Origin: Thalia democratica
Taxonomy: Eukaryota
Reading direction: 5' to 3'
NCBI GenBank assembly: GCA_965202585.1
Contig: OZ241828.1
Coordinates: forward strand, 35,588,001 to 35,652,000
DNA: 64,000 nt
A model generated the notes under the pieces. That model saw nothing but the letters and a program-made list of their open reading frames with translations. It made no database searches and was not told the origin of the DNA. Both the position numbers and the translations under genes were made by a program. Positions 22,501 through 50,190 of the stretch are shown here, piece after piece (within the stretch, counting starts at the first letter, position 1; each line of letters begins with the position of its first letter).

Positions 22501-25500
22501 AATAAATAAAGAGTTTTTTATTAATTTTTTCTACATTACTAAAGTTAAAGACATGGAGAAGTGTAAAAGAAACATTGTCTAATTGCTAAACAATTAAAAC
22601 AAATATAATAATAGTTTAGTTTTAATTTTGAAAAGTTTAAATATAAATCAATGCCTAAAAATATCTAATAAGAAATGTAAAAATAAACAAAAAAAAAACT
22701 TTGATAATTAAAATTACAATAGCTCCAACCAATAAAACATGCTTTCGTAAGAAAAAAACATGATAATTGTGCAACATTTTCCGGTTTACTTCAAAAGAAT
22801 TATAACAAATTTTAGGTTAGTATGTTACCTTGTATGTTTTTAGTAAAAAAATTAGTAGAAAAATTTGACAGTGGTAGCCTGCTTCATACATAAACAACTG
22901 AGTATTGATTATGTAATATGACAAAATCAATAAATAGATCCAATGATCACGAAGTTTTTGCTTAAAAGGAAAGCTACTTAACAATGCTGTTTAAACATCC
23001 TTTTATTACAACTAAAAACACACTAATTTGCGTTTTTAATATTAGTTCAACCCTTGGTGAAATATATTTTAAAACAACATTGGGTTTCGCCTACTTAAAG
23101 AATTGATTTTTTTTGTCATGTTTAAACACTGTCAATCAGTATTAATTTAAAATAAGACAAATTTTACACAACATAAAATAAATTTATTCGGTCATTAAAC
23201 TATGTCAAATCAGTTTAAACTTCCTTTAAGTTTTATTTGTAACAGTTAGTCTACTTTTGATATTTTTGGTTATTTAGGGGGTTGGATTTTAAAGCAAAGT
23301 TGTTTCCCCTATTATTTGATGTATCATCAAAAAAAATTAAAAAAAAGTTTTTTAATATTTATTCCCTTAACCTTAACCCACTTTACCCAAACATATTAAA
23401 AACTAATTAATATATAAAAAAATTATAATTTTTTATGCTGACCCAGCAAATATTGTGGTATTTACGTCACATTAACAAAAGGACTCTTATTTAGGTTAAA
23501 AATTATTTACGTTATATAGAAAAAAAAACTTTAGATTTTTATTCAAAGTTTATTTAGCAAGTTAAAATGTTTTTTCACAGTTTTAAGTTGATCAAACGCA
23601 TATTTTCTTGAAAGTACGAATAATTTAACTTATTAAAGGTTTTATGAACAAAAAAATGAAAAGTTAAGAAATTAATTTATTTTAAAAAGATTTAACCTAA
23701 ATACAATATAAAACAAAAAGTAAAATGCTACTACTCTTGTAGCAAAACTAGTAACATTAAAAGAAAAGATAATAATCTTTTTATAAACATTATACACACT
23801 TATTCTTTTATTAACAAAATAAAAAGCACTTGTTATTAACTATACAAAATAAGTACGAAACTGTTTTTAGGTTTATAATAACTATAAAATGTCTAAACCA
23901 ATAATAGTTTTTGTATATATTCTTATTTTAACTATCCAAAGTAATAGTTAACTTTTTTTTTACATTTATTAAATTTAAAAACTAAAACTATTGTAGTTTC
24001 TGAAATTATTTTAGGTTACCTGACCTTTACACGTACAAAAATATCGATCTGAATACGATTTTTTAGTTTTAGTTTTAGATTATCAACTGGTGTGAAAAAT
24101 GTGAAAAACAGTGGCATGCAAGTAATCTTGTTTATGGTTAGTTTTTTGATGAAATTTGTATTGAAAATGTGTGAATCGAAACACATATGTTGTAATTATG
24201 CAACTAACAGGAATAAAAAATTGATAATAAAACCTCATACCCAAAAAAATATTTCGACAATCGTTTAAAGTAAAAATCAAGTAATTCTGATTATATCCCA
24301 TAAAAATATAAAAGTTGATAATAGTTGTTTGTAAGATAAAAAGTGCAAAGTATAATTTGCTTTATTGAAAAAATTGTTTAAACCACAAAAATAGTTATTG
24401 AATTTAACTATTTGAAATAAATCTTGATCTTGTTAGTAGAAAACTGAGAACTTAATTTTAATTAGAAATTAATTGTAAAGCTATATATATATGTTAAACT
24501 CTAAATCTATTAAGATTACTAAAAGTTAAATTTATCACTTCTAAGTAATCATTAAATAACAATTTTGAAAAATGTTTTAGATATTAACTTGTTTACAATA
24601 ATCTAAAACACTTGAGTTTAAAACTTAATTCTCTTTACAGTAAAAAGTTATAATTTTTTTTTAATTTGAAACTATATTTACGTTTTTATTTTTTGTACTA
24701 ACTATTCAAACGAACCGTTTAATATCTGGTTTTTGTAGCTGAATTGGTTTATGTGATAAATATTAAGTGAAGAAAACAATAACCACGTGATACAAACTAA
24801 TACGTCAGTGATTGCAATTTGAATCATGTAAGATGCGTACACTGATCCTCGAACCTAAAAACAGTTAATCAATTTCTTTGAAAAATAATAGAAACTACTG
24901 CTAATACAGTTAAGCTAAAGTATTCATCATTGAAATTTATTTATATTACAAAAATGTTCCTCTTTATTAAACAAAAACATTTTCTAAATTTTATTATATA
25001 AAATAAAAAACTTATACCTTACTAGTAATTAATGAATTTAGATTTTTTTAAATAACTAAGCACTAAAAGTAAAATATTCATATATAAAAGCTAATTTAAC
25101 TATAAATTGGTGTTTGATAAAACTGAAATTAAAACTATCTTAGACATCATATTGTAAGCTTTAAACCACTAATGATTAAAAGGTATTTTTATATGCCATA
25201 TATTTCGTATCGCGTGTATAACTTATAGTTAATTTTTTAAAGGTGAACTAAGTTATTATGATCTATTATTTGAAAATTTATAATATATCCTTTCAAAGAT
25301 AATGATTTATACTACAATTAACTTAATTTTACAAAATAAACCTTATAAAGTTTTTGTTTTATACCAGTTTAAAATAAATTTGGTAACTGAAAATAAAATT
25401 TATTACTTCATTAGGAAAATCGAAGTTTCTATAAAATATTAATTATCCAATAAAACAAGTCAACAGGCGAGTTTAAGTTTATTGTTACTTGGTTTCAGTT

Positions 25501-26272
25501 TGCTTTTTAAAACAATCACTAATGATAAATTTGCCCTTTCATATAAAGTTAGTTTTATATAAACATCTATGTAGTTTTATTTCTCTTTATTTCAAACTTG
25601 TTTTTGTAGTTCGCAATTATTAATTTTTGATTAGCATTTTTTCTACAAGTTGTGGAACAATTTGTTATATTTTTTATTTACAAAAGAGCAAAGTTTCTTT
25701 AAAAGTAAGTTTCACATAATAGTTTTTTATAAAAATCCGTGACAAAAATAGACCAATACTTGTTTTCAGAATGGCATTAACAGGAAAGGCTTATTAAGAT
25801 AGATTATTTAAATGAAAATACATGTAAGTTTGTAATTTTACTAAAACATGCAATACTTTGTATTTAAGAAGTTATGTAAATCGAAAACGAACAAAGTTTA
25901 ATTTTATTTATCTTAAAACAAATAAGATAATTGTAAAAAGTAACTTGCTACATAAAGTCATAGAACACTTTTACTAAAGAAAAAAAAGTATGTTTGTTTC
26001 AATCAAACATTAAAAGTTTGAATAAACGTTTTAAAAACTTTTTTTTTTTTAATCAAAAAAATAAAATAGTTTTAGACAAAAACTTGTGACTTTCTTTAGT
26101 AGTATAAAACTAATAAATAATTTTTAACCTGTTTCATTACAAAGAATACAACTAATATTCCAGTGTTAAGCAAAACTCCGAGTAGACACTGAACTATAAA
26201 AATAGAGTGACTTATAATTGAGTTTTTAATTAAAACATGTTCATTTGTCGAGTTCCACAATTCTGACGTCAT
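14914..26272 (-). CDS. Class A (rhodopsin-family) GPCR copy A, chemoattractant/C3a-receptor-like with giant ECL2; 8 coding exons, 655 aa
   Basis: Exons 26272-26129, 24854-24716, 21874-21708, 20868-20741, 20611-20361, 18938-18306, 17073-16931, 15276-14914 sum to 1968 nt with matching phases and GT-AG sites. Motifs: GVLLN (TM1), IAITD (TM2), ERF (TM3), W4.50, FFLPY/SY (TM5), CWLP (TM6), NPIVY (TM7). Confidence 0.88.
16931..17073 (-). CDS. GPCR A exon 7: end of ICL3 and TM6 (CWLP)
   Basis: TTTACAG|AT GGG TAT ... ATG CAG|GTTTGT. Confidence 0.9.
18306..18938 (-). CDS. GPCR A exon 6: distal ECL2, TM5, ICL3
   Basis: ACTCAG|TA CAG TTG ... AAA A|GTACGT; ORF track 18274-18933. Confidence 0.88.
19541..19569. 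repeat. (TA)n microsatellite
   Basis: About 14 TA units; shorter in copy C (~60600). Confidence 0.9.
20361..20611 (-). CDS. GPCR A exon 5: entirely ECL2 (FNEHTGNEGPKW...SCEQLKNDNIVYD)
   Basis: TTTTTCAG|T TTC ... GAT A|GTAAGT; open 251 nt in all three copies; missed by the ORF track. Confidence 0.85.
20741..20868 (-). CDS. GPCR A exon 4: TM4 and start of ECL2
   Basis: TTACAG|AAA AAG ... AAA CT|GTTAGA; KKLTYIISGMMWIIAFICILPSII. Confidence 0.82.
21708..21874 (-). CDS. GPCR A exon 3: ECL1, TM3, ERF motif
   Basis: CTACAG|AA GGA ... TTT AAC|GTTAGT; NFHFYINIFLLAAMSIERFVAV. Confidence 0.88.
24716..24854 (-). CDS. GPCR A exon 2: ICL1, TM2
   Basis: TTTTTAG|GTT CGA ... AAC G|GTTCGT; YMIQIAITDVLVCITWLLF. 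Confidence 0.85.
26129..26272 (-). CDS. GPCR A coding exon 1: N-terminus (NST sequon) and TM1
   Basis: ATG at 26270-26272; MTSELWNSTNEH...LLGVLLNTGILVVFFVMKQ|GTTAAA. UTR acceptor CTAACAAAG| at 26302. Confidence 0.85.
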
Positions 26273-27960
26273 AGTCCTAGCTTTGAACTTGACTAACACT
26301 TCTTTGTTAGTAAAAATTATTGAGATAAACTAAATTAACGTTTAGAAGCTGATAATTTATTTAAAACTGGTTAAAAAAAGCTCTCCTAAAAGCTTTTAGA
26401 AGTTCAGAGTTTGAATAATAGATAATAAACTATTTTAGGATTTTAAAGTACATAAAACAATGTAATATAATAGAATACTATTAGTGAGTATATAAAAGTT
26501 TAGATAATGGTATCAAATTTAAGTTAGTTTAAATAGTATTGATTTTACCTATTTAAAAAAAAAACAAGTTTTATACCAAGTGGAAACATTTAGTAAAATT
26601 CTCAAAAAATAATTATTCAAAGCTATTGTGTATAAACTTTGTTACTTTTAATTTGCAAGTACAATTGTAAAATACACTGACATCAAATAAGCATACAAAA
26701 CTTTAACACTAATAAAACATAGAAAACATTACAAACTAAATCAGTATTGTAAGCTATCACTAAACAAAACTTTTAATTTCTGAATACTTGCCACTTTTTT
26801 AATTTACATATCATAAGCAGCTAACAAAATTTAACTGATTTAGGTTTATTTTTTTAGATTTTCTAAACTCTTATGTATGTGTTACGTATAAAAATAATTT
26901 TTAGTGTTAAACTCTAGCGATATATTGCACAATTTAATGATTTAAACAAGTTTATTTTGAGGTACAATTTAATCATTTACAAAGAAATCCATTTCAAAAT
27001 TTTTGCTAGACTAATTTAAATAATAACATTGCTAAGAATATTCCCATTTTTAATTAGACTAGTCTTGGTAGACGTAAGATAGAAAAAAATATATTTTTAG
27101 TTTCTGTAAGTTGTTAATAGAAATACAACTGTTTTTTACGCTTATTAAGAGCTAAAAATAGATAACGAACTAAACAAATTCCTACATTTGTACGTATAAT
27201 GACAACTCGAAGTTATTTTTCAAAAGTAATAATTATAACGGTAATATTGTAACAAAATATGCCTTCCATTACTGAATGCCATATGGCATACATCATTTGC
27301 CATTAAGTCATATACACATTTTGCTCATGACATGTATGAATTAAAAAGTCTCTAAACTTTCAAAAACTTTTTAGAAAGTTGAAAAAAAAAATCTTTTTAT
27401 TTTCTTAAAACTTTTCTGTCTGTATTTGAATTTTTTAGTTGAGATTTAGTTATTTGAAAAACAAGAATTTTTGTGTTTCATTTTCAATTTTTACTTTTTT
27501 TATGTCTTCTTGTTCTTGATAAACTTTTTTATTTAAATTATATTTAGACCTAGCATAAAACTCTAAAACATAAAATTAAAAATTATTTTTTATGATGTAG
27601 TTTTATAAAAAAACAGATACGATGACAATGCCTTTAATTGTAATTCTAATAAAACTGTTTTACAAAAAAAAATGTATTACAGTAAGACTCAAATCACCTG
27701 GTCGTTTTATATTTGAATTAAAAAAAGAATCGAACAGAAAATTATATATTAAGTATAACTGGATACCTTACAAAGAAACTTCTATCAAGTGTAGACTGAA
27801 TGAAAAGCTGCCTTTAATCCCAACATAAATGCACACAACACACATATATTATTCTACATTTCTACCAAAGCTGCTACTTAACATGAAGTGTAAAGCTCTT
27901 TTGACTTTGAACTTCATTAAAATAAAAAAACAATCCATTGGTTTAAGTTTTCATGTTATA

Positions 27961-28059
27961 GAAAGTTTCAGTGAGCAAAACCTTCATCTTACATACCGCT
28001 GACCACTAACAATGCGCAAATGTCATATAAATTACAAATCGAATTTATATACAAACTTC
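27961..28059 (-). promoter_or_regulatory. Putative core promoter plus short 5' UTR exon of GPCR A
   Basis: 99 bp identical to 48501-48599. TATATAAA (minus) at 28044-28051; donor GCG|GTATGT at 27997/27996. Confidence 0.55.
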
Positions 28060-28659
28060 ATCCTTTCGATACTCACATGTTTCTTTTTACTTTTTCGTTC
28101 TCTCTTTTAAGGAAGCGTGGTTGGATAACGGCTCGGTTTGAAATTTTCAGCATTTAAACTTTGGTAAGTAAGCTTAAATGCTGACAGGCGAATAAAATTT
28201 AGAAAAGTTATAACTTTGAATTGTTTTTTGAAACGAAAGTTGAATAAAATTCGTTTTTTAGATTGTTGTGTGAACTAGAAAATTTGTACAAAAGTTTCTA
28301 GAAGTTTTGTAACTAAAACTAGAACAAAACTTCCAACTTGAATGAAAAACATAAACCATTTTACAAAACAAATTAAATTGATAGTTTAAACAAAGCATTA
28401 TGAGTTATTTACTTAAAAAAATATTTGAAAAATCAAATACGATTAGTTGTACGACACATCTTTTGAAATATTGTAAAATGTTAATAGGGTATTAATGCAA
28501 CGCCTTGAGTTATCTAAGTACTTTTAATCAATAGCAACAAAATTATATTGTCCATTATAAATTTACTAAAGAGTGATTACCTTTCATTTCATACAAAATG
28601 ATACAATTTACCACAAAAGTTTGTAAAAACACCTCTCAATATTTAAAATATTTGATTTA

Positions 28660-28830
28660 TCAGCAGCCCTACCCAAAAGCACGCGCGTCGCCAGTTCGCC
28701 TTGTAACCAGATTTTTTCACAAATTTCACGTAGAACGCATTTTTCAACAAACTCAATTTATAACACAAGTTGCGTTGAGAAAATTTCATAATTACAGTTT
28801 AGTAACGCTGCTTCTCGCTGGAAACATCAC
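28660..28830. promoter_or_regulatory. Conserved CpG-containing upstream element of GPCR A
   Basis: Indel-free, high identity to ~49190-49360 amid more diverged AT-rich flanks. Confidence 0.4.
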
Positions 28831-31189
28831 TTTTTCAATTATTCAAAAATAAAAGCATTTACATATTTTTTTACGATTTTCCTTTGAATTTTTTTATCTA
28901 AGTATTTTCTAAAAATTTTATCTAACCACAACCTTCCTTTTGCTATAATTTTTTTTTAAACTTAACATTACTCAGTTTTAATAGTTAGTTTTTTGCTTTT
29001 CACTTTTGTTTTCGAAACCACTAGTTTTAAGTTCTTTTGTTTTAATATTATTTTACTTATTTAGAAGTAATTAATAAAAAAAGTTTAAACGTTATTTTAG
29101 TAAAAGTTTTAGCAGTATAACTGACTTTGTAACTAAAATATAAAAAGTTATAATTGAAAATAAGACCGTTTATAAATTTAATAATAAGAATTATAAAACT
29201 ACTATTACTATTTTATTTCAAAAATATTTTCTAGTAATACTTATTTGTTGTTAAAATTTTCATAAACATTTTCTTTTGTGTTTGAGTTCATTATGTTTTT
29301 ATCAAGATGAAATTATTTAGGAAGTATTTTGCGGCCTGCGTTTTTGATTTTTGAATACTTTTTAAAACAGATTTAAAATAAATATAAGGTTTTTCTTTTG
29401 ACAACAAACGCTGCTTTAAAATATAATAAATATTTAAAATAACTAATAATCAGTAATTTTCCTACATTTTCAAAAAATTACAACAACAACTATTCCGTTA
29501 TTACAACAAACTTATATTTTATACATGTGTAAAGTTTATCCTTTTAAAGCACAAGTAATCCCTTTTATAATAATATTAAAATATGAATAAAAAACATAAA
29601 ACCATCTAAAACAACTTTACAATTGTTCATTTACATAAAAAATTTTGATTTAAGTATTTCTATTAAATTTTAAGAGTAATAAAAATGAATTCTGATCCTA
29701 CTATCTACACTATTAATTTAAAAATAACAGAAACCACTTATCATTATATGTTATATTAAAACTAAGCCAGAATTATGGTTCACTGTTTATTATTAGTGAT
29801 AAAACTAAATAATTGATAAATAATAATTAAATACTTACTAAAACAAAATTTCCTCATTTTTTGTTTTATAGTTATCGCTTTTATTTATAGTAAAAAATCG
29901 TATGTACGTTATCATGTACAGTACAAAAATCAAATAAAAACATAAATAGATGTTCAAACATCGTTGTAAAGTTTAATAATGTTCTTTCAACTTATGCTAC
30001 CGAAATTAATTCTGCCTAACATTAGGTTGCTGACTAAACCTCAAAACTATTAATAATTATTTATGTTTTACAGCTATTTAAACTAAGCATTTCATTTAAT
30101 ACCGTAAAACTCGTGACTTATTGATGCACAAATACAAAAATGTGCATAAACTTTCATAACCCGTTTGTATATACACACAAAAATTATAATTTATTTTGTA
30201 TAATGTTCCTTAGTACGTAATAAGATTGTACCAACACAATATCAACCAAACGTTAATTAAATTTAATTGTATACAACCATACAGTCTGATCGTTGACGCA
30301 TTAAAATTTTAATTAAAAAAATTGTGAACAGAAAACTTGTGTTAGGTCATATAATTTCAAACGGTAAACTATAACATATTTTAGTGTATAAAATCGAAAA
30401 AATGATTCAAATGATAAAATTCAATTAAAAATAACACTAACACTTTACTGTAGTATTGAATGTATCTAGCTCTCTTGTATTCAATATAGCTTATTTTTAC
30501 AAACAAATACTGTTACAAGTATTTTATAACACTATTACCTAAAGCTATTTTATAGTTTAAAAAGGTAACAAACATACACATTTTTATTTATATTAAACTT
30601 AACGTTATCTTGTTTACTCTAACAATTTTATTTTAGCAAGAAAATAAAACTCAATTTTTCTGCTGTAAAAGTGTTTTGTTTAACAAACGCTTTTTAATAC
30701 TAAGATTTTCATACACTTTTTTAATATTGTTTACTAGATTTCACAAAAGAACCTTTTAGTCTCTATATTAAAAGCATACTACCATATCGTTAAAATAAGC
30801 TCCCTTTTTTCTGCTGTCAATACAAACGATTTCTATGATAATAATCTGTAACAATTGTATGAATATCCTTGGCTGAAGTTTTGTTTTGAATTAATCCACG
30901 CGTTAGTACATGTCAACCACGAACAATATTTATCTCATTTTTGCGGCAGTTACAAGTATGTATCAAAAATTATTGAGCAAGTTTAATTCTGGTGTTGTTT
31001 TTTCTAAATGTATACTTTAGTTTTTTAAATTGTATTAGAACACAACAAGGTAAAAAATATTTTTAAAACCGGTTCACTTTTCGAATAGTTGTCACTACAA
31101 TTTAATTTTAAATAATCACACAATTGTTTGTTTAAAACAAGTGTACAGTTGAATTTTTTTATTCATAAAGCTTATTGTATGAGTTTTAA

Positions 31190-36565: not shown

Positions 36566-36928
36566 TCATGAATCGCTTTCTTCGTTTATCGGCGACAAGC
36601 TTTCTAATTGGTTCGTTTCAGCGGCAGTTTTATTCATCCGTTCTGACATCAACAAAGGACTGACAACTGTGGTATCGATTTTGGGGCTTTTATCGTTCGT
36701 TTCATTTACAAACTTTGTATTAGCAGTGTTCTTACTGTACATCATTGTAAAATTAGGAAATCGGAAACATTTGTACAATTTTGAAACGACGTGCTTTCTT
36801 ATGTACTTGTTAATGTCTCTCTGTGTTGTGACGTACACAATAGGGTTCAGTAAAACGCTGAAAAAACTTATAATTCGGACTATTGTTATAATGGCATGGC
36901 AATAGTTTAGGTCCTTTTCTTCCAAGCC
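36566..36928 (-). CDS. GPCR B exon 8 (TM7, C-tail)
   Basis: Paralog of 14914-15276. Confidence 0.8.
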   Translation of the reverse strand, partial: GLEEKDLNYCHAIITIVRIISFFSVLLNPIVYVTTQRDINKYIRKHVVSKLYKCFRFPNFTMMYSKNTANTKFVNETNDKSPKIDTTVVSPLLMSERMNKTAAETNQLESLSPINEESDS

Positions 36929-38447
36929 CTACAAAGTTTATTTAATTTAATTAAAAGTTGTTGAAACGTATCATATAAAATGTTTTAATAGTATTGTACA
37001 ATGAACATTTAAAAACCAGACAACATGATTAAATATATTTTTTTACAAGTATAAAGTTTTTATACGTCACATGTTATTCAAGTTATCATGAAAAATGTAA
37101 AATTAAACATAAAAGAATAAAAACAACAACTTAGTCTTATTAAAACTTGATAGTATTTAGAAAAGTTTAGCTGTTTTAATTTTACAAAATTTTAGAATGT
37201 TGTAATTAAAAATTAATATTTAGTTTTAATTCCTCTGGTCCTATCTTTTTTTTCTGTTGCAGTATGTTTTAAAAGTCTTTTTTTTATATTTCAGTTCAAA
37301 ATTAACATCTTATAATTTTGTTGTACTTTAAATAATGTATATATTGAAAATTATCTGTTAATTTACTAAGTTGAAATATCTTTGGTTTAAGTTCAGTATA
37401 TTTTCTAACTTTTGAACTTTAAACTTAATTTCTAAGCTTTGTCTATTTATTAAATAGCCGTTAATGTTAGATCAGTTACTACTTTTTAAGTTATTACACA
37501 ATAACTGGATAATCAAACCTTATACCTACATATAGATTAATTAGTTTTATAGTTGTATAGCACGTTTTTAATGTGTAAATGTTATATAAAAATAAAAATT
37601 GCTAGTTAGGAATTATTTGCTATTATTAAATATAAATGGTTTGGAAATTTTAAGTTAAAAAACTCTTATGCTGATCTATGGATCAAAAAAATTTATTAGA
37701 ATAATGAGATTATCAAATACAACTTACATGTTTTAATTTGTACTTTTAACTTTAAAAGCACTCTAAAAAAGTGAATAAAATGTTACTAGTTATAAAAGAT
37801 AAGTTTTGTAAAAAACGAAAACTGTTTTCATGTAATAAAAAGTTTTGAAGAAAAACAAAACTAAGTTTTTTATATAGCATAATAATCATAGATGATAAAA
37901 ATTTGTTTTAAATGTGTTTTAAAAATTTAGTTAAGCACAAAACAAAAAAGTATAAGAAAAAAGTTTCAACATTCGTTATGTTTCAGAAAATTCAGTACTG
38001 CTTATAATGTGTAATTAATTATACTTTAGCTATTAAATATATATTTGCTAAGTATATTTGAAGTTATAAAATACTCTAAACAGCTTTATCTAGCTTTAAA
38101 AAATATACTATAATAATAACTTAATTTAAGCTTAAAGAGAAAATTGTACTGTACCATAAACTATTTAAAATAAGCAATAAAGATCAATAGACTTAAAAAA
38201 TATATAAAGTGTTGATAGAGTGTTCTTAAATTTATGTCTTAGATAAAAAAATTAGACTTAAAAACCGCTAAAAACTAATTAAATGTTATCATTTATTAAA
38301 TTTATTCGTCAAATAGTTAGAGTATTTTAATTATTAAACAAATAGTTCTTTGTTAGACTGCCTAAACTTTTAAACTTAAAATCGAAGGTCAAAATAGTTA
38401 AAATTTAAAACGAGCTGATTTTTATAACTTGTGTTGACATTACAAAC

Positions 38448-38590
38448 CTGCATAATGTAAACAACCATGAATATTTTTTGTGGTAACCAGCATATTGAGA
38501 AGACAATCACGTAGGCAGTCACTGTTTTAGCAATCTTGATGTGTTTTTCAGCATTTTTGTAAGCTGCGGTTTTAACACTTAAATACCCCA
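38448..38590 (-). CDS. GPCR B exon 7 (TM6)
   Basis: TTTTGCAG|TG GGG ... CAG|GTTTGT. Confidence 0.8.
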
Positions 38591-39147
38591 CTGCAAAAGA
38601 GTGTTTTTTTTCAACAAGCATATAAGATATTATATTGTACTGGTAGCGTTATCAATAAAAGCTTAATAATGTTATTTTTTAAAGGTCTCTAATTTCATAC
38701 TATTTTTTTTGCTATTTCATTTTATTAAGTTTGAAAAAAGCCTATTTGATTTTTAAAATACTTTAAGTCATAGCTTATGTCAAGAGATAATTATAAAAAC
38801 AGTTTTACAAATTAATTTGTTCTAAATACGTAATTTATGCTTATATATACATACATCAAAAACTAGAAGTTTATATAATTATATACTAGCTAACTTAATG
38901 GTATAAACTAAATACAAATTTTGCAAAAACAATTTTGATTGTACTAAAAGTGTTAAAAAAATGAATATTCTTAATTTTTTTTATTAATAAATTATTATTC
39001 AATTCTATTTTACATATTAAACTCAATAGTGGCTATCCTAAGCAATATTCAACTATTGAATTGTTCTTTTACTATTTTACTATAAGATAAAGTTTTCAAA
39101 ATAAAAAATACTAAAATTTGTTGTAAGCTTCGTAGTTCAAAACGTAC

Positions 39148-39780
39148 TTTTATTTTTAGTTCTGTCGGATTTTTTTTCTTCAGTTTCTGTCACGACTTCC
39201 TTGCTTCTACTTGGGCAGGTGAAGTTAGGCGGAGTAATTTTTGTTCCCGGACTGATTTGAACGCAGGTCTGATCTGTGAAGAAGCTCTCAGTTGAACTTG
39301 CTGACGCGTTGCTCACCGGTCTCCTCTTCCGGTCCACCATCCTGTTCACCGGACTCAACTTCAGTTTTGGCACCGAAGACTTGTTGAACTTGACAATTGG
39401 GCTCAACGTGGTTTCTTTCGTGTCGCTGTGCTTCATTGTGGAAACGTTGGAGTTGAACAAGCTCCTGTCGGTGTTCATTCGGCTCCTGGCTCTCTTGTTT
39501 ATCATGTAGGCGATCCCTGAATAGCTGATTGCAATGGCGATGTAGGGAAGAAAAAATCCAATGACCACGTCGACTGCAATCTTGTATATTTTCGTTTTGT
39601 ATTCGTAGTTTGGGGCACAAGTGTAGCTACTTTCAATTTGTTTAGTTCCATTACTCTTAATCCATTCCCCATAGTAGTACAACAACCCTTCATATTCATT
39701 TTCTCTGATATCTGGTACCTCGTCTTCTGTTGTTTTTATGAAAAGCTCATTAAATGCTAAAATTGTTTTTAACTACAGTT
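39148..39780 (-). CDS. GPCR B exon 6 (distal ECL2, TM5, ICL3); TAG near the 5' end unless the acceptor at 39757 is used
   Basis: ACTCAG|AA CTG TAG; alternative TTTTAG|CA TTT in the same phase; donor A|GTACGT. Confidence 0.7.
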
Positions 39781-41113
39781 CTGAGTGTTAGAAAATTAAT
39801 ATGATTAATACATATGTGTAATAATTTTTGTGTTGTATCTTGATTAAAACTTAAAAGTAAAAGTTATTATTAATAATCTTTAGTTTCTAAAGCTAAAATT
39901 AACTGCATTTTAAATACTGTTAAAAAATGTCAGTTTAAGTGCAACAAAGATTAAAAAACAAGATTTTATTTACAACAGCTTACGTTCAACTTTAAAAAAA
40001 ATAGCTAAATCTGTTAAACACGCTTTTTATGACAACTATTCATTCATAAGTTCTTAATCATTACACAACAACAAGATAAATATTATAAAGATGCACTAGC
40101 AATTCCACTTTAAAAAAGATACTGGAATCATATAAAAGTGTGCATAAACAAAAAACACATCTAACAAAACTATCTACTGAATTATGGATTAAAAAGACAT
40201 TAATAAAAATTAAGACACAAATAGGACATTATGAGCTGAACTATAGCAAAACTAACTTATAAAATTGGCTGTAAACTACACAATATATTTACTTCGACAA
40301 GTAGAAGCTGCAAAAAAATTACAAATCTAAAGCTTTAAACTAAGATTAGCGATGTAGAAAACAAATATTCAATGCAAAAACTAATCTTCCATCTACTCAA
40401 ACAACTAGAATTTACAAAACTAGAAATATGTGGATATTACATTGAATACTTTAAAATTTATTGAATTTTAGAAGGTGTTTTTTTTTTATGAAGACAAAAC
40501 AATATGAATTTACTTCTCTTATTTAAGTAACCCTCTTTTTTCAACGCATACATAAAGGGCACTAATTCTTTAGTTCAATAACTTTTAAAGAGTTTAATGT
40601 AATAGTCACTTGTTTGTAGTTTAGTGAATTTTAGTTGTTTGTTAAAATGGAAAATTAGTTTGCACTGAATATTTGTATTCTACAATATTTCATAATTACG
40701 TCATAGTTTTTTTTTGTTCTTTTCTATAACGTTTGTATTAATGTTTAGCAAAGTGCAAATAATTTCGAACCTACAGCTGATAATAAAAAATAATAATATA
40801 TTTTATTAAAAATATGTTCCGTATATTTTAAACTCGAACTTTCTTAATAAATTATTTAAAAGCCCTTAAAGTGGGTTTTGTGGAAGGTAATTTAGTTTAT
40901 TAATAATTTTATAATAGCTGTTTATCAGTTTATATTATTAAATATTAATATTTATATCTAGTATATATTAAATTAAGTATATATATATATATATCAATAT
41001 TAAATTTCTTTCAAGTTATAAATAAGTTTAGTGGCTATAAAAAATCATGGTTTTAATTATTTTAGAGGAAGAACGTCTAAATACTAACAAGAATTAGTTT
41101 GACTAAAACTAAC

Positions 41114-41364
41114 TATCATATTCACAAATGTCGTTTTTTAACTCTTCGCAAGAATAAACTGTTTTGACTTTATAATATGAATAAGCGATATCGCACATGA
41201 AGTTTGTGCAGTTAAAAGCAGATATGTTATATCCTGGAACGCTTTCTATATTAATGATATCAAGTTTATACTTAATTTTCCAATCAATTGCTTCTTTGAA
41301 AAGGAAATGGCAATCATTCCAATATTTCCACTCCGGTCCTTCGTTTCCAGTATGTTCGCTGAAA
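41114..41364 (-). CDS. GPCR B exon 5 (ECL2)
   Basis: Open 251 nt; donor GTTAGT. Confidence 0.78.
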
Positions 41365-41493
41365 CTAAAAAAAATTTTTTATAAGTGAACTATGTAAAGA
41401 CTACATACTTTTGTATCTAAGCTTGGAAATCAACAAAAACAATGTTTTTGCATAAAGATAAGTGAATACTAAAAAGCATATAAATTTTCTAAC

Positions 41494-41621
41494 AGTTTAT
41501 CATTATTTGAACCAATTTTTTGTTGATCCCCAAAACCAAGTTTTCCGTCAATGAAGCTCGGCAAAACACAAATAAAAGCAATTATCCACATCATTCCGCT
41601 TATAATGTATGTTAACTTTTT
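41494..41621 (-). CDS. GPCR B exon 4 (TM4)
   Basis: 128 nt, paralog of 20741-20868. Confidence 0.78.
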
Positions 41622-42455
41622 CTGTAAAAATTTAATTGTTACTATTGATAATTAATGTTATATTAGTCTTACGTATAACAAAACAATACTTAATTGATTT
41701 ATTCTATTCTAAATCTCTAATAGTAATTCTTTATAATAACAGTATAAATTTGAATTGGTTCTTGTCTTCAATATAAATGAGCAAAAATAACTTGGTTTAA
41801 ACAAATAGTAAGACAAAATTGTAAATATGTGAACGATGATATTCAAAATTTAGAAAAACTATATAAGTTCAAAGAATTTATTATATGTTGTTTTATACAA
41901 ATTTTTTTTTTGCTAACACACAATGTTAAATTCAAAACATAATCCGTAAAACGTAGTTTAAGCTGTTTTATTAAAATGCTTCTTTCAATTTGTGTGCCTA
42001 AATTTAAAAATAACGGGTTATTATACAAATTAACTTCTATAAGTTTTAAATAAAGATCTTTTAAAATAATTTCTTATAAATTATTTTATCAAATGTTTAT
42101 CAAAACGTTTGAAAATATTTAAATATTTTAAATTGTGCATTTTGATAACAGTAGTTAACAATTTCGAAAGAAAAATAATTAATATAAAACACAAAATTAT
42201 ATAAAGGAAGCTTTAAACTTTTGTTTTAGTCGAGCGAAAAAATGTTTAAAAAATAAAAATTATTAACAAAATATGCTTATAACATAAACTTTGTTTTCTT
42301 TAAAAACTATTTTTAGAAACTATATTATTTTTAAAAAATTATTCAAAACATTTACAAAAAATATAAAAAGTTAAACAAAACGATTTTTTATAATGAAGAA
42401 AATAATAACTGTTTTTTTTTTTTGCTGATAACCTATAAAAGTAATTAAAACTAAC

Positions 42456-42622
42456 GTTAAACTGATATCTTTGACATCTAATCGACTTCCAAACAGCTAC
42501 AAATCTTTCTACACTCATTGCAGCCAGTAGAAATATATTTATATAAAAGTGAAAATTGTATACCGTCACCACAGAGTTTATCAACTTCATATCGAAACTT
42601 GAATCAATTAGATCGCCTCCTT
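42456..42622 (-). CDS. GPCR B exon 3 (TM3, ERF)
   Basis: 167 nt; ORF track 42339-42590. Confidence 0.8.
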
Positions 42623-45360
42623 CTGTAGTAAGCGCTATTAAAAAAACTTTTGTTTGTTCATTAGATTCAAGCTTTTTTTTTTTTTTGAAATTAAAGTTAA
42701 GATTTTATAACATAAGTAATGTATTTTTTTTCTCTTATTTTGTTTTAAATTTATGATCAAAAATATAAGCCCACTACGTAAAATTTTCAAATCTTAATTT
42801 GTACTCTTTCTTTACTTATTTAGTCTATTAATACAAAAAAAAATTGTCTGAAATTTTTAAGTCAAATACTTTTTATGAGCTAATTAAATGTTTATACCTA
42901 ACGTATTAACACTATTTTAATAATTTGTACTTTGCAATTTGAATTCTTCGTTTGTGTCATTAAAAATTTTCCTTTATTGTCCTGATGGGTCTGCATATTA
43001 AAATTAAAAAAAAAAACTTAGTTTCCAACTTAAAATCGAAAGTTTTTTTGGAATTTATCAAATATTAAACCCGACATGTTTTAAAACTTTAAAATTTTAA
43101 CTTCACATAAAAGTTTTATAACATGTTAAGTGTTTTGAACCTGGCTTATTATAATCTTGTAATTGTGTTATTTCAAACAGTAAATGTTTTTTGTAAGTAA
43201 ATGCTTAAACATATTTTTCAAAGTGAATGTTATAAATACAGATTTTTTATCAATTTTTTCTACGTTATTAAAATTTAAATAATGATGTAATGTAAAAGTA
43301 ACACTGTCTTATTACTGAATGAATAAATATATATATAATAGTAGTTTAAATTTAACTTTCGAAAAGTTTAAATATCAATCAATGCCTAAAAAAAACTAAT
43401 AAAAATTTCAAAATAAAAAGTAAACACAAAATTTGACAATTAAAATTATAATAGCTCGAATTAATAAAGCTACTTTTGAAAGAAAGAAACATTAAAATTA
43501 TGCAACATTTTCCGGTTTACTTCAAGAGAATTATAACAAATATCAGGCTTACGTATGTTGCCTTGTATGTTTTTAGTAAATAAATTCGAAGAAAATTTTG
43601 ACGGCGGTAGCATACTACACACATAAACAACTGAGTATTGATTGTATAATATGACAAAATCAATAAATAGATCTAATGCTCACGAAGTTTTTGCTTGAAA
43701 GGAAAGCTACTTAACAATGCTGTTTAAACATTCTTTTATTACGACTAAAAACACACTAACTTACTTTTTCAATATTAGTTTAACCCTTGGTGAAATATAT
43801 TTTAAAACAACATGGGGTTTTGCCTACTTAAACAATCGATGTTTTTTGTCATGTTTAAACACTGTCAATCACCGTTAATTTAAATTAAGACCAATTATAC
43901 ACATACAATAATAATTGAATTTATTCTGTCATTAAACTGTGGCAAATCAGTGTAAACTTCTTTTAAATTTCACTTGTAACAGTCAGTTTACTTTTGATTT
44001 TTTTGAAGATTTAATTTAAAAATATTTTAATATTAATTATAAAAAAAGTAAATTCATTCAAAAATTTACTGAGCAGTTTTAAATGGTTTTTTTACAGTTT
44101 TTAAGTTGATCAAACGCATATTTTCTCGAAAGTACAAAAAATGTTTAATAATTTTGTAAACAAAAAAATAGAAAAGTTTTGAAATATAGTTAATGTTATT
44201 AATTATTTCGAAAAAGTTTTGAACTAAAAGCAATAAGAAACAAAAAGTAAAATGCTATAACTCTTAAAAAAATTAGAAACGTTTTTACCAAACATTATAT
44301 ATTTTTTTTTCATAAACATTATACACACTTATTATTTTAATAATTATATAAAAAGCAATTTGTATCAGCTATACAAAATAAGTAGGAAACAGTTTTCTAG
44401 GTTTAAAGTATTTAAAAAATATCTAAATTAACAACAACTTCTATTTCTATTCATATTTTAACTTTCCAAAATAAGAGTTATCTTTTTATTCACGTTTAAC
44501 AGATTTAAATACAAAAACTAATATAGATTTTAAAATAATTTTTGGTTACTTGACCTTTACACATACACAAATATCGATCTGAGAATAACTATATTTTTTA
44601 GTTTTAACTTTAAATTATCAACTGGTAGCCTAAATGTGAAAAAACAATGGCATGGGAGTAACTTTGTTTAGGGTTAGTTTTTTGATGAAACTTATATTTA
44701 AAATGTGTGAATCAAAACACATACGTTGTAATTATGCAACTAACGGGAATAAAAAAATTTATGATAAAACCTCATACCCAAAAGAAAATTTAAGTATTTA
44801 AGCAAAAATTAAAACTTGTGTTTAAAGAAAGTTAAAAATTTGTAGGCTATTTAAGTCTGAAAACTAACTAAAAATTTTAGTATAAAAACTATTAGATAAA
44901 AAAAATATTTTACGACAATCGTTTAATGTAAAAACCAAGTACTTCTATTTTTTTTTGCAAGAAGACATAAAAGTTAATAAAAGTTGTTTTTAAGATAAAA
45001 ACTGCACAGTATAATTTGTTCCATTGAAAGTTGTGTTAACAACAAGGCTAATTGATAAAATCAACTATCTAAAAATAAATTTTGATCTCGTTAATAGAAA
45101 ACTGAGAACTTAATTTTAATTAAAAATTAATTTTAAACTTATTAATATATTTCAAATCTAAATCTATCAGGACAATTAAAAATTGAATTTATATATTTTT
45201 AGCTATTTCATAGTAAAAGTTTTTAAAAGGTTTTTTTTGGTATAAACTAGTTTATTATAATCTAAAACAATTGATTTTAAAGCTTAATTCTCCCAAAACT
45301 AAAAAATTATAAGTTTATCTTTTTACTTATGATTTTGTTGTACTAACAATTCAAACGAAC

Positions 45361-45499
45361 CGTTTAATATCTTGTTTTTGTAGCTGAACTGGTTTATGTG
45401 ATAAATATTAAGTGAAGAAAACAATAACCACGTGATACAAACTAATACGTCAGTGATTGCAATTTGAATCATGTAAGATGCGTACACCGATCCTCGAAC
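45361..45499 (-). CDS. GPCR B exon 2 (TM2); first ATG in frame at 45470-45472
   Basis: 139 nt with only 3 differences from the copy A exon. Confidence 0.78.
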
Positions 45500-46104: not shown

Positions 46105-46808
46105 GCGGGTTGAAGTTTATTGTTACTTGGTTTTAGTTTGCTTTTTAAAATAATCACTTATGATAAGGTTGCCCTTTCATATAAAGTTCGTTTTATATAA
46201 ACATCTGTGTAGTTTTATTTCTTTTTAGTTAAAGTTTTTTTGTAGTTTGCAATATTTCAAATTTTTTAAATAGCGTTTTTTCTACAAGTTGTGTAATATT
46301 TTTTTTTCTAAATACAAAAAATTCAAAGTTTCTTTAAAATTAAGTATTTAACATAATAACTTATATAAAATTTCGTGACAAAAATAGACCACTACTTGTT
46401 TTAAGAATGCCGTTAAGAGGATAGGCTAATTAAGATAGATTTTTAAATGAAAATTTAAACGCGAGTTGAAGTTTATTGTTACTTGGTTTCAGTTTGCTTT
46501 TAAAATAGTCACTTATGATAAGGTTGCCCTTTCTAGTTTATATAAAGTTCATTTTATAAAAATATTTATGTGGTTGTAGTTTTTTTTTTGTAGTTTGCAA
46601 TACTAAAATTTTTTTAAATAGCACTTTTTCTACAAGTTGTATAATAACTTATTTAATTTTTTGATTACAAACAGTTCAAAATTTCCTTAAAAATAATTTT
46701 TTTACATCAAAATTTATATAAAAATTCGTGACAAAAAAAGGCCACTACCTGTTTTCAGAATGCCATTAACAGGAAAGGCTAATTAAGATAGATTATTTAA
46801 ATGAAAAT
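46105..46808. repeat. Copy-B-specific ~350-bp tandem duplication in intron 1
   Basis: 46105-46452 and 46461-46808; single copy in A at ~25467-25818. Confidence 0.85.
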
Positions 46809-47100
46809 ACATGTAAATTTGTAATTTGACTTAAAAACATGCAATACTTTGTATTTAAGAAGTTATGTAAATCGAAAACGAACAAAGCTTAATTTTATTT
46901 TTATCAAAACAAACAAGATAGTTGTTAAAAGCAACTAAATACTTAAATATGTAAAAAAAATTAATAAAAAAGTGGTACGCCTGTTTCAAACAAACATTAA
47001 AAGTATAATTACACGATTTAATAACTATATATAAGACAAATATATAAAAATAAAGTTGTTTTTGACAAAAATAGTTGTTTTACTTACTAGTATAAAACTA

Positions 47101-47264
47101 GCCAGTATTTATTTCGGCCATCATCAACAAGTTGAGATGTTTTATGCCATTTATAATAAACAATGAACTTTACCGCAAGATCAACAACAACAGCATCCGA
47201 GACAATCCTACGACCGGTTTCGTCCTCATTAGGACTCATCAGGCAGGAATAGTCGCGAGTTTTC
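47101..47264 (-). mobile_element. ~165-bp Penelope-like/retrozyme-like insert replacing ~620 bp (A 26112-26733), including the ATG/TM1 exon
   Basis: Homology to A ends at TAGTATAAAACTA (47100) and resumes at ~47265 (AAATTAGTATTGTATGCTATCAC). Contains a hammerhead and AATAAA (minus, 47108-47113). Confidence 0.7.
47197..47258 (-). ncRNA. Minimal type I hammerhead ribozyme (predicted cleavage between 47212 and 47211)
   Basis: GAC UAU UCCUGC CUGAUGA GUCCU AAUG AGGAC GAAA CCGG UC / GUAGGA UU GUC: perfect core, 5-bp stem II, palindromic ACCGGU helix III, GUC triplet, 6+3-bp stem I. Confidence 0.92.
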
Positions 47265-48500
47265 AACTTAAATTAGTATTGTATGCTATCACAAAACAAA
47301 ATATGTATGCTTAATACTATTTTATCTACCTACCATGAGCAGCTTACTAAACTTAATTGATTTAAGTTTATTTTTTAATATTTTCCAAAATCTTAAGTAT
47401 GTTTTATGTATAAAAATAAATTAAAAGCGTTAAACTCTAGCTATATATTGCACAATTTAATGATTTTAAAAAGTTCAGTTTTGAAGTACACTTCTACAAT
47501 TCATTTCAAAATGTTTACTGAACTATTTTAAATAATAACATTGCTTGTAATATTCCTATAATAGTTTAAATTAGTCTTGATAGACATAAGGTAGTAAGAT
47601 AGACAAAACTCTATTTTTAGTTTCTGAAAGGTGTTAATAGAAATACTGCTGTTTTTTACGCTAATTAACAGCTGAAAAAATGATAAAGACTAAACTAATT
47701 CCTACATATGCATGTAAATAACATTTTGAAGTTATTTTCTAAAAGTAATAATTATGACGGTAACATTGTAACAAAATATGCCTTCCATTACTGAATGCCA
47801 TATGGCATACATCATCTATCATTAAGTTATTTACACATTTTTGTTTGCTCATGACATGTACAAATTAAAAAAGTCTCCCGACTTTCAACTTTTTTTTTTA
47901 AATGGATTTTTTTTTTCCAAAATTTTATCTGTCTGCAACTGTTTTTTTTAGTTAAGGTTTAGCTGTTTAAAAAAAAGGAATTTTTTAGTTTCAATTTCTA
48001 GTTTTTGTTCTATTTTATGTTTTTTTTTTGTTATTGTTATACTTTTTTTTATTTAATTTATAAACATACCAAGTATAAAACTATAAAAACATAAAATTTT
48101 GAAATTAATTTATATAATATAGTTTTATAAAAAACAGATGCAATGACAATGCCTTTAACTATAGTTTCTACAAAACTGTTGTACAAAACAAAACTTTTAT
48201 AACACAGTAAAATTTAAAACACCTGGTCGTTTTATATATTATTTAAAAAAAAGTCAAACAACATAATATAAATCAAACATAACCAGATACTTTACAAAGA
48301 AACTTTTATCAAATGTAGACCACATTGTAATGAAAAGCTACCTTTAATCACAACATAAATGCACACGACGTACATATATTATTCTACATTTATACTAAAG
48401 CTGCTACTTAACTTGAAGTGTAAAGCTCTTTTGACTTTGAACTTCATTAAAATTAGAAAAAATAACAAACAATCCATTGGCTTAAGTTTGTCATGTAGTA

Positions 48501-48599
48501 GAAAGTTTCAGTGAGCAAAACCTTCATCTTACATACCGCTGACCACTAACAATGCGCAAATGTCATATAAATTACAAATCGAATTTATATACAAACTTC
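48501..48599 (-). promoter_or_regulatory. Putative core promoter plus 5' UTR exon of GPCR B
   Basis: Identical to 27961-28059; donor at 48537/48536. Confidence 0.55.
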
Positions 48600-49189
48600 G
48601 TCGTTTCGATATAATTACTGTTTCTTTTTACTTTTTCTTCTCTCTTTTTGGAAGCGTGGTTGGATATCAGCACGATTTGAAATTTTCAGTATTGAAACTT
48701 TTTTGAGTAAGCTTAAATGCTGACAGGCGGAGATACTCAAGAAAAGTTGTAACTTTAAATGGGTTTTTGAAAAAAAGTTGAGTAAATTTCTTTCACTAGA
48801 TTGTTCTGTGAATTAAAACTTTTGTATTGAAGTTTTGTAACTAAAACTTGTAAAAAACTTTCAACTTGCTTAAAAGACTTAAATCATTTTACAATCCAGT
48901 TTAAATTGATAACTTAAACAAAGCACTATGAATTATTTAAATAAAAAAATATAAAGAAAAAATCAAATCTGTTTAGTTGTAGGACACATCTTTTGAAATA
49001 TCGTAAAAAATTTTCGGGCTATTAATGTAACGTATTGAGTTATCTAAGTTATTTTAATTAATAGCAACATAAATATATTGTCCATTATAAATCTACCAAG
49101 AGTTATTATCTTTCATTTAATACAAAATCATTTAATTTACCAAACAAGTTTGTACAAACACCTCTTAATATTTAAAATATTTGATATAC

Positions 49190-49360
49190 AAGCAACCTTA
49201 CCCAAAAACACGCGTGTCGCCAGTTCGCCTTGTAACCAGATTTTTTCACAAATTTCACGTAGAACGCATTTTTCAACAAATTCAATTTATAACACAAGTG
49301 GCGTTGAGAAAATTTCATAATTACAGTGTAGTAACGCTGCTTCACGCTGAAAACATCACT
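49190..49360. promoter_or_regulatory. Conserved upstream element of GPCR B
   Basis: Paralog of 28660-28830. Confidence 0.4.
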
Positions 49361-49856
49361 TTTTCAATTTATCCAAAAGTAAAAGCGTTTATCTTTTATT
49401 TCAATTTTTCTTTGAAAATTTTCAACTTACGATTTTCTATAAATTTTATCTAACCACAACCTTCCTTTTGCTTTAACATTATATAAATTTAACATTACTA
49501 AATAAAATCTTTTTGTTCTTCACTTTTATTTTCGAAACTACTAGTTTTAAGTTCTTTAATTTAAATATTATTTTACTTCGTTTGAAGTGATCAATTTATA
49601 AAAGTTTAAATGTTATTGTAAGCATTAGCAATATAACTAACTTTAAAACTAGAATATAAAAAGTTATAATTGAAAAACCGACCGTTCATCAATTAATGAT
49701 TGAAAATATAAAACTGTTTTTACTATTATTTTTCAGAAACAAATTTTAGTAATACTTATTTTGTTGTTAAAGTATTTATAAACTTTTTCTTTGCTGTTTT
49801 AGTTCATTATGTTCTTTTCACAATGAAACGATTTAGGAAAAGTTTTGCGGCCTGCG

Positions 49857-50190
49857 TAATATTATTGTTATCTAAACTTTGGCCGACCACAAATTTTTGA
49901 ACATTCCAATGTTATAAGAATATTTAAAAAACAAAATTTTTTCTAGGTATTTAAGCCATTTTTTTGAAAATTGTTCTGAAAAAGTTTTAATTACTCTATT
50001 CAAAAACTAAGATTGTAAATAGGAAATAGAATTAATTAATTAGTTAAGATTTTAAGTAAGAAAAATATTTAATCATCTTTTTTTATATTCATAGACCATT
50101 TTGATAAAGTAAAATAATAAAAAGAAAATACAGTTTCCGTTGTTTTTTATTTTTAGTTATATTTCTAAGTTCTATGCTATAAAAAGCAAA
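49857..50190. other. ~335-bp insertion in the B-C spacer that is absent from the A-B spacer
   Basis: A reads GCGGCCTGCG|TTTTTGATT (29340); here unrelated sequence intervenes. No clear TSD. Confidence 0.55.

Follow-up and report, generated by a model that had tools for sequence, protein, structure and literature searches.

A truncated hammerhead retrozyme in place of the first exon of a receptor paralogue in Thalia democratica

One paralogue (copy B) in a tandem receptor array of Thalia democratica carries, where the other copies of the cluster have the exon with the start codon, half a unit of a non-LTR retrozyme with its hammerhead ribozyme. We consider it very probable that this is an ordinary transposon knock-out, in which a truncated, dead-on-arrival retrozyme was inserted, exon 1 was deleted and the ribozyme was a passenger. 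Copy B is a young gene without a start codon and has most likely just become a pseudogene; its family numbers at least seven. The insert reveals neither a new kind of element nor a new regulatory mechanism.

Receptor cluster and loss of the first exon

The window (the whole 64,000-nucleotide stretch analysed here; 24% GC) contains a tandem segmental duplication with a period of ~20.9 kb (Table 1). Each copy holds an 8-exon gene, and the exon pieces of copy A match Pfam 7tm_1 in profile order. Comparison of the window with itself paired A 25467–26112 with B 46461–47100 and A 26729–29341 with B 47261–49857, so that ~160 bp in B stand in for ~617 bp of A; junction alignments against A, C and a further paralogue, D, placed the replaced stretch at 47099/47101–47263. 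The counterpart segment measures ~617–670 bp in A, C and D and includes the ATG/TM1 exon: C (L031:2408–4405), which is 95% identical to A over 2 kb, keeps it, and D has its exon 1 at C4:35679825–35679968 in a segment of ~670 bp. Besides A, C and D, the three cluster members on the opposite strand also retain exon 1; B is the only one without it. No spare or alternative exon 1 was found upstream of B by tblastn with the exon peptides of A. The remaining exons of B contain no stop codon in the stretches read as coding, with exon limits placed by eye.

In the upstream flank, D is the nearest relative of B (94% identical). As D retains the ~670-bp segment, the comparison of paralogues indicates that the exon-bearing state is ancestral and that B underwent deletion and insertion. 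Downstream of exon 1 the flank of D is only 77% identical to B, and the difference from the 94% found upstream suggests a mosaic or gene conversion. Among the copies in the window, A and C are 93–95% identical, and A–B and B–C ~84%; a unit of two genes seems to have been duplicated as the receptor array expanded. The former intron 1 of B also contains a 350-bp tandem duplication (46105–46454 and 46461–46808, 81% identity) of a sequence that occurs once in A. In another paralogue of B, a composite inverted and direct insertion of the sister retrozyme family described below, with the target duplication CTAATAAAATATA, separates exon 1 from the upstream flank (L039:905–1465; G000:C191, ~42850–43410). 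Two copies of the receptor family have accordingly been struck near exon 1 by two different retrozyme families.

Table 1 Positions of the receptor copies, the insert and the ribozyme parts in the window
Feature	Position	Strand	Remarks
Duplication copy A	~12953–33646	gene minus	
Duplication copy B	~33738–54517	gene minus	
Duplication copy C	from 54744 on	gene minus	
Segment of A without counterpart in B	26113–26729	minus	457 bp of 5′ flank, exon 1 and 16 nt of intron 1
Exon 1 of A (TM1)	26272–26129	minus	ATG, 48 codons, MTSELWNST...VMKQ, then GT
Exons 2–8 of B (TM2–TM7)	36569–45499	minus	81–98% amino acid identity to A (tblastn)
5′-truncated, hammerhead-bearing non-LTR retrozyme copy	47099–47259	minus	161 bp; unit positions 1–162 of 327
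AAAA, filler or remnant at the 5′ junction	47260–47263	minus	unlike the repeat unit and paralogues A, C and D (junction alignments)
Type I hammerhead motif	47189–47258	minus	Rfam HH9 match and pairing check
CUGAUGA core	47242–47236	minus	
Helix II, GUCCU-AAUG-AGGAC	47235–47222	minus	5 bp, 4-nt loop
GAAA	47221–47218	minus	
Palindromic helix III, ACCGGU	47218–47213	minus	
C17	47212	minus	predicted cleavage 47212/47211, before G47211
AAUAAA hexamer	47108–47113	minus	inside the 55-nt 3′ tail of the element; 98 nt past the cleavage site

The insert and its ribozyme

The two ends of the insert differ in character. Its 3′ end is the usual 'tail' terminus of the family, ...AAAUAAAUACUGGC(UA), which was also found in 13 other arms; target sequence follows, the terminal two bases TA being common to element and target. 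For a break at random, the chance of landing no more than 3 nt from either usual family end is ~4%. This end adjoins intron 1, 16 nt past the lost donor site. The 5′ end lies 8 nt upstream of helix I and is joined through AAAA to ancestral sequence ~617 bp upstream. Junction alignments against A, C and D revealed no target duplication but a target deletion instead, and the insert has no second arm. With 42% GC against 22% in the flank, the insert stands out from its surroundings; it is 97.5–98.8% identical to copies on at least nine chromosomes, with 2 mismatches in 161 positions to its closest relatives. Since this 98–99% identity exceeds the 94% of the B–D flanks, the insertion, judged by divergence, is recent, and its recency accounts for exons 2–8 of B being still intact.

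The RNA quoted in an earlier sequence-only reading of the window is present exactly as given on the minus strand, where it forms a type I hammerhead that is complete and runs in the same sense as the receptor gene. The replacement of ~620 bp of A by ~165 bp in B, the removal of the ATG/TM1 exon from one paralogue by an insertion–deletion and the AAUAAA ~100 nt downstream were likewise read correctly (~617 versus ~160 bp, one copy of the cluster and 98 nt, respectively). Direct reading and alignment to the HH9 consensus showed the conserved core (CUGAUGA, GAAA and the U-H cleavage dinucleotide), which is surrounded by three helices. Helix I (5′ strand GACUAUUCCUGC, 3′ strand GUAGGAUUGUC) is open-ended and consists of 6 bp, an internal loop and a distal stem, and helix III of the lone copy amounts to 1–2 bp within the palindrome ACCGGU. 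At gathering scores, the whole window gave no Rfam matches. The hammerhead search that had been proposed as a check thus succeeded only at relaxed settings: a scan of 601 bases matched HH9 over the full model length (1–77) with 29.8 bits (E = 1.9e-5), 22 bits below the gathering score of 52, because loop 3 is missing and helix I departs from the consensus. A chance motif was ruled out by copy number (722 exact copies, against none for the reversed control). The 'minimal' form named by the sequence-only reading, that is, a Penelope-type hammerhead, was rejected as well, as a 6-bp helix I with internal loop is the canonical metazoan type I (PMC4209133), the form found in non-LTR retrozymes.

Folding predictions separate the monomer from the dimer. 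For the 66-nt region of one copy, the lowest-energy fold (−21.2 kcal/mol) is not a hammerhead, and the canonical hammerhead fold reaches −7.1 kcal/mol. Two copies co-fold as a double hammerhead with a 6-bp ACCGGU helix III at −46.5 kcal/mol, compared with −42.4 kcal/mol for two separate monomers (2 × −21.2). The lone ribozyme of B is therefore predicted to need a second copy for the double-hammerhead form. Metazoan type I hammerheads with a 1–2-bp helix III and a palindromic loop cleave poorly as monomers and well as dimers (PMC4209133, PMC7229834), and the predicted dimer preference agrees with this published dimer cleavage. By these models the single copy in B should not cleave well alone, from which we infer that it is inactive here.

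The retrozyme family and its insertion pattern

On first look, the 164-bp stretch had 1829 candidate sites in the 802-Mb genome, with matches that are 97–99% identical. The matches belong to a tandem repeat with a 327-bp unit, and within an array the units are 99–100% identical; L016:1501–1827 served as the reference unit onto which the insert of B was mapped (Table 1). The exact 35-nt ribozyme occurs 722 times in the assembly and its reversed pattern 0 times. The unit has 42% GC and no meaningful open reading frame (longest stop-free stretch, 94 codons in a trimer). Short tandem repeats with a type I hammerhead in each, no ORF and low GC are the marks of a retrozyme, and the 327-bp family is an animal non-LTR retrozyme, a known class that is very common in this genome. 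The retroelement origin proposed for the insert is thereby borne out, in the form of retrozyme/Penelope-type tandem arrays throughout the genome. The AAUAAA occupies the identical unit position in all copies of the family; by this position it is element-borne and not host-acquired.

A sister family (799 exact copies) has the same helices II and III and a different helix I, GACUGA/UCAGUC followed by a distal UUUCGGU/ACCGAAA. Of the six proximal pairs of helix I, three have both bases changed between the families and one has a single base changed; the distal stem still pairs with an entirely different sequence, and the arrangement is retained. This pairing was compared by direct register, as a MAFFT alignment had put gaps in helix I. 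The changes with pairing kept lend modest but real support, from two compared lineages, to a constrained hammerhead fold.

The mode of insertion was read from 19 non-overlapping loci mapped to the reference unit. The 5′ ends are scattered anywhere in the unit, whereas the 3′ ends lie at two fixed sites about 55 bp apart (unit ~104–108 or ~160–168). Many insertions are composite (L002, L012, L016, L019, L024, L028 and L030): an inverted arm abuts a direct arm with both 3′ ends outward, and target duplications of 9–11 bp flank them (AGAAAATAAAG at L016); for the family as a whole, the range is 9–13 bp. In every two-armed insertion examined (for example, L016, L019, L024, L028 and L030), one arm ends at ~107 and the other at ~162. 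The 55-bp tail is strictly one-sided, a regularity that may bear on second-strand priming. The 19 loci display the Penelope-type insertion signature; the copy in the window shares the truncation and the usual tail end and lacks the second arm and the duplication.

A Penelope-like parent for the family was sought among GIY-YIG loci, of which a Pfam search gave at least 136 hits. In 35 sampled loci, BLAST, an Rfam scan and a hammerhead descriptor found no hammerhead and no similarity to the unit, while the positive control L016 was recovered. Of the outcomes that the sequence-only reading had offered for a genome-wide BLASTN of the insert, tandem retrozyme arrays were found, and a GIY-YIG parent was not among the 35 loci. 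At L075 (G000:C7:24117000–24125000), a tandem 3580-bp element with an intact 964-aa ORF and a GIY-YIG domain is probably a Penelope-like element of recent age, and the hammerhead search was negative here too.

Origin and fate of copy B and comparison with known systems

We propose that the family spreads through RNA and integrates by target-primed reverse transcription, leaving Penelope-like scars. In B, a nick within intron 1, 16 nt from its start, would have primed reverse transcription from the usual 3′ tail end, and 162 nt would have been copied; the 5′ end would then have been joined ~617 bp upstream with a 4-nt filler, with loss of the DNA between the joined ends (457 bp of 5′ flank, the ATG/TM1 exon and the donor site). 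The promoter of B has probably gone with the 457 bp, so that B has presumably lost its function, although a cryptic promoter is possible. Treating insertion and deletion as one event is the simplest account, and a later, separate deletion fits equally well. Two steps, or the capture of retrozyme cDNA during the repair of a chromosome break, would fit the absence of a target duplication and the 4-nt filler at the 5′ junction, and the 350-bp tandem duplication at 46105–46808 is a further local rearrangement in the intron 1 of B. In one version, a normal retrozyme insertion, perhaps a longer array or a two-armed one, entered intron 1 or the promoter region, and a later, unrelated deletion took its 5′ part together with exon 1. 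We consider these routes unlikely, though not far-fetched: the 3′ end is exactly the usual tail end, as expected of primed reverse transcription and not of random capture, and one event is simpler, even though a single allele cannot separate them.

Other readings concern what B does now, or whether the assembly is correct. A cryptic promoter, or one brought in by the element, might still drive B and yield a 6-TM protein with an altered N terminus, as the AUG within CUGAUGA (47239) opens 22 codons to GCG|GUAAAG at 47173, where a candidate GT donor lies in phase 0 like that of the lost exon 1, and the downstream exons are intact. This reading comes from the sequence letters; A at +5 and G at +6 make for a weak donor, this half of the unit has no known promoter and intact exons are expected anyway after a recent hit. 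A run search with the 3-kb stretch around the insert returned no RNA runs. Two marine metatranscriptome runs (2016) contain 22–24% of the 31-nt words of exon 6 of B (39143–39790), but 38% of these exon-6 words are common to A or C and the runs cannot be assigned to B; they hint that some member of the receptor family is expressed. An altered protein is accordingly very unlikely. We give still less credence to the proposal of the sequence-only reading that ribozyme and AAUAAA form a built-in attenuator in intron 1, or a re-wiring device, that cleaves sense RNA entering B. In its favour, the ribozyme lies in the sense orientation with an intact core and intact helices, exons 2–8 are still open and thousands of family copies could provide partner RNA in trans for a dimer. 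Yet the deletion of exon 1 and 457 bp upstream, with no alternative exon 1 further upstream, leaves B without intron 1 and probably without a promoter; the activity of a lone ribozyme of this type is low by published reports (PMC4209133, PMC7229834) and by prediction; the supposed poly(A) signal belongs to every copy of the family, being simply the 3′ tail of the element; the insert is too young for any signal of selection; and retrozymes are depleted from genes in the single study that looked (bioRxiv 10.64898/2026.07.22.740005). A trans-active ribozyme, to which RNA of the ~700 sister copies would pair through ACCGGU and helix I for cleavage of read-through or cryptic RNA entering B at 47212/47211, seems to us fainter again as a prospect; if true, solo copies of a dispersed retrozyme family would be sites of sequence-guided termination throughout the genome.

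The least probable of the accounts is an artefact in which a repeat-induced misjoin dropped exon 1 of B from the assembly. In favour of it, the insert is a repeat of high copy number within a tandem duplication, and none of the short contigs from four runs that align to this site spans the whole of it. Support for the junctions comes from the assembly and from short contigs of possibly the same sample: a 266-nt contig of run X1 matches 46858–47123 with no difference, covering B-specific flank and 23 nt of the repeat, and the B-specific flanks on both sides are at single-copy depth. The junctions are clean, as in a genuine insertion that ends at the usual 3′ terminus, and the paralogue flanks are only 77–94% identical, which makes collapse unlikely. 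Many apparent joints in contigs were discarded, as their sides were ~20 nt long and derived from other copies of the repeat. Run X4, whose organism or sample label is different, gave a contig that covers 46871–47101 with 96% identity to the downstream flank of B and stops exactly at the junction. Its stop, set against the continuation of the X1 contig 23 nt into the repeat, makes a presence/absence polymorphism of the insertion possible.

Taken as a retrozyme knock-out, the event in B is a clean, datable insertion of a hammerhead retrozyme that removed a first exon and a likely promoter. It would mean that retrozymes, which usually lie outside genes, can cause the loss of a paralogue in a tandem receptor array, and the insert offers a natural single-copy ribozyme suited to probing the need for a dimer.

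Animal non-LTR retrozymes were described in 2020 by Cervera and de la Pena (PMC7229834) and a recent preprint argues that they derive, as non-autonomous forms, from Penelope-like elements (Li et al. 2026, 10.64898/2026.07.22.740005). As in these sources, the 327-bp family consists of tandem repeats of ~170–400 bp with one type I hammerhead each, no ORF and GC below 50%, has target duplications of more than 4 bp and reaches thousands of copies per genome. It also resembles the axolotl HHR_Amex1 in a short palindromic helix III that favours cleavage as a dimer. The window copy departs from this class in comprising half a unit, with one ribozyme and nothing arrayed in tandem with it, and in having a target deletion in place of a duplication. 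With Penelope-like elements (PMC4209133, PMC8557442) the family shares strong 5′ truncation, partial tandems, an adjacent inverted, 5′-truncated arm and AT-rich targets, and a tail at one end only (~55 bp, compared with 30–40 bp in Penelope-like insertions; PMC8557442). Unlike those elements, the 327-bp unit has no RT or GIY-YIG ORF, and its ribozyme is the canonical form with a 6-bp helix I, whereas the repeats of Penelope-like elements have min-HHR.

The amniote intronic hammerheads HH9 and HH10 (Rfam RF02275, RF02277), of which HH9 is the best Rfam match of the B ribozyme, are sense-strand hammerheads within genes, which an attenuator in B would resemble. They have a stable helix III and keep the same gene positions across species; the B ribozyme, by contrast, is without loop 3 and belongs to a single, young repeat copy. 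For retrozymes or Penelope-like elements, we found no description of target deletions of this kind in the literature examined. Human L1 insertions (Gilbert 2002; Symer 2002) have reportedly produced target deletions of hundreds of base pairs, in which the 3′ end is canonical, the 5′ end is truncated and a target duplication is absent. The event in B resembles these deletions in outcome and differs from them in the element and the enzyme.
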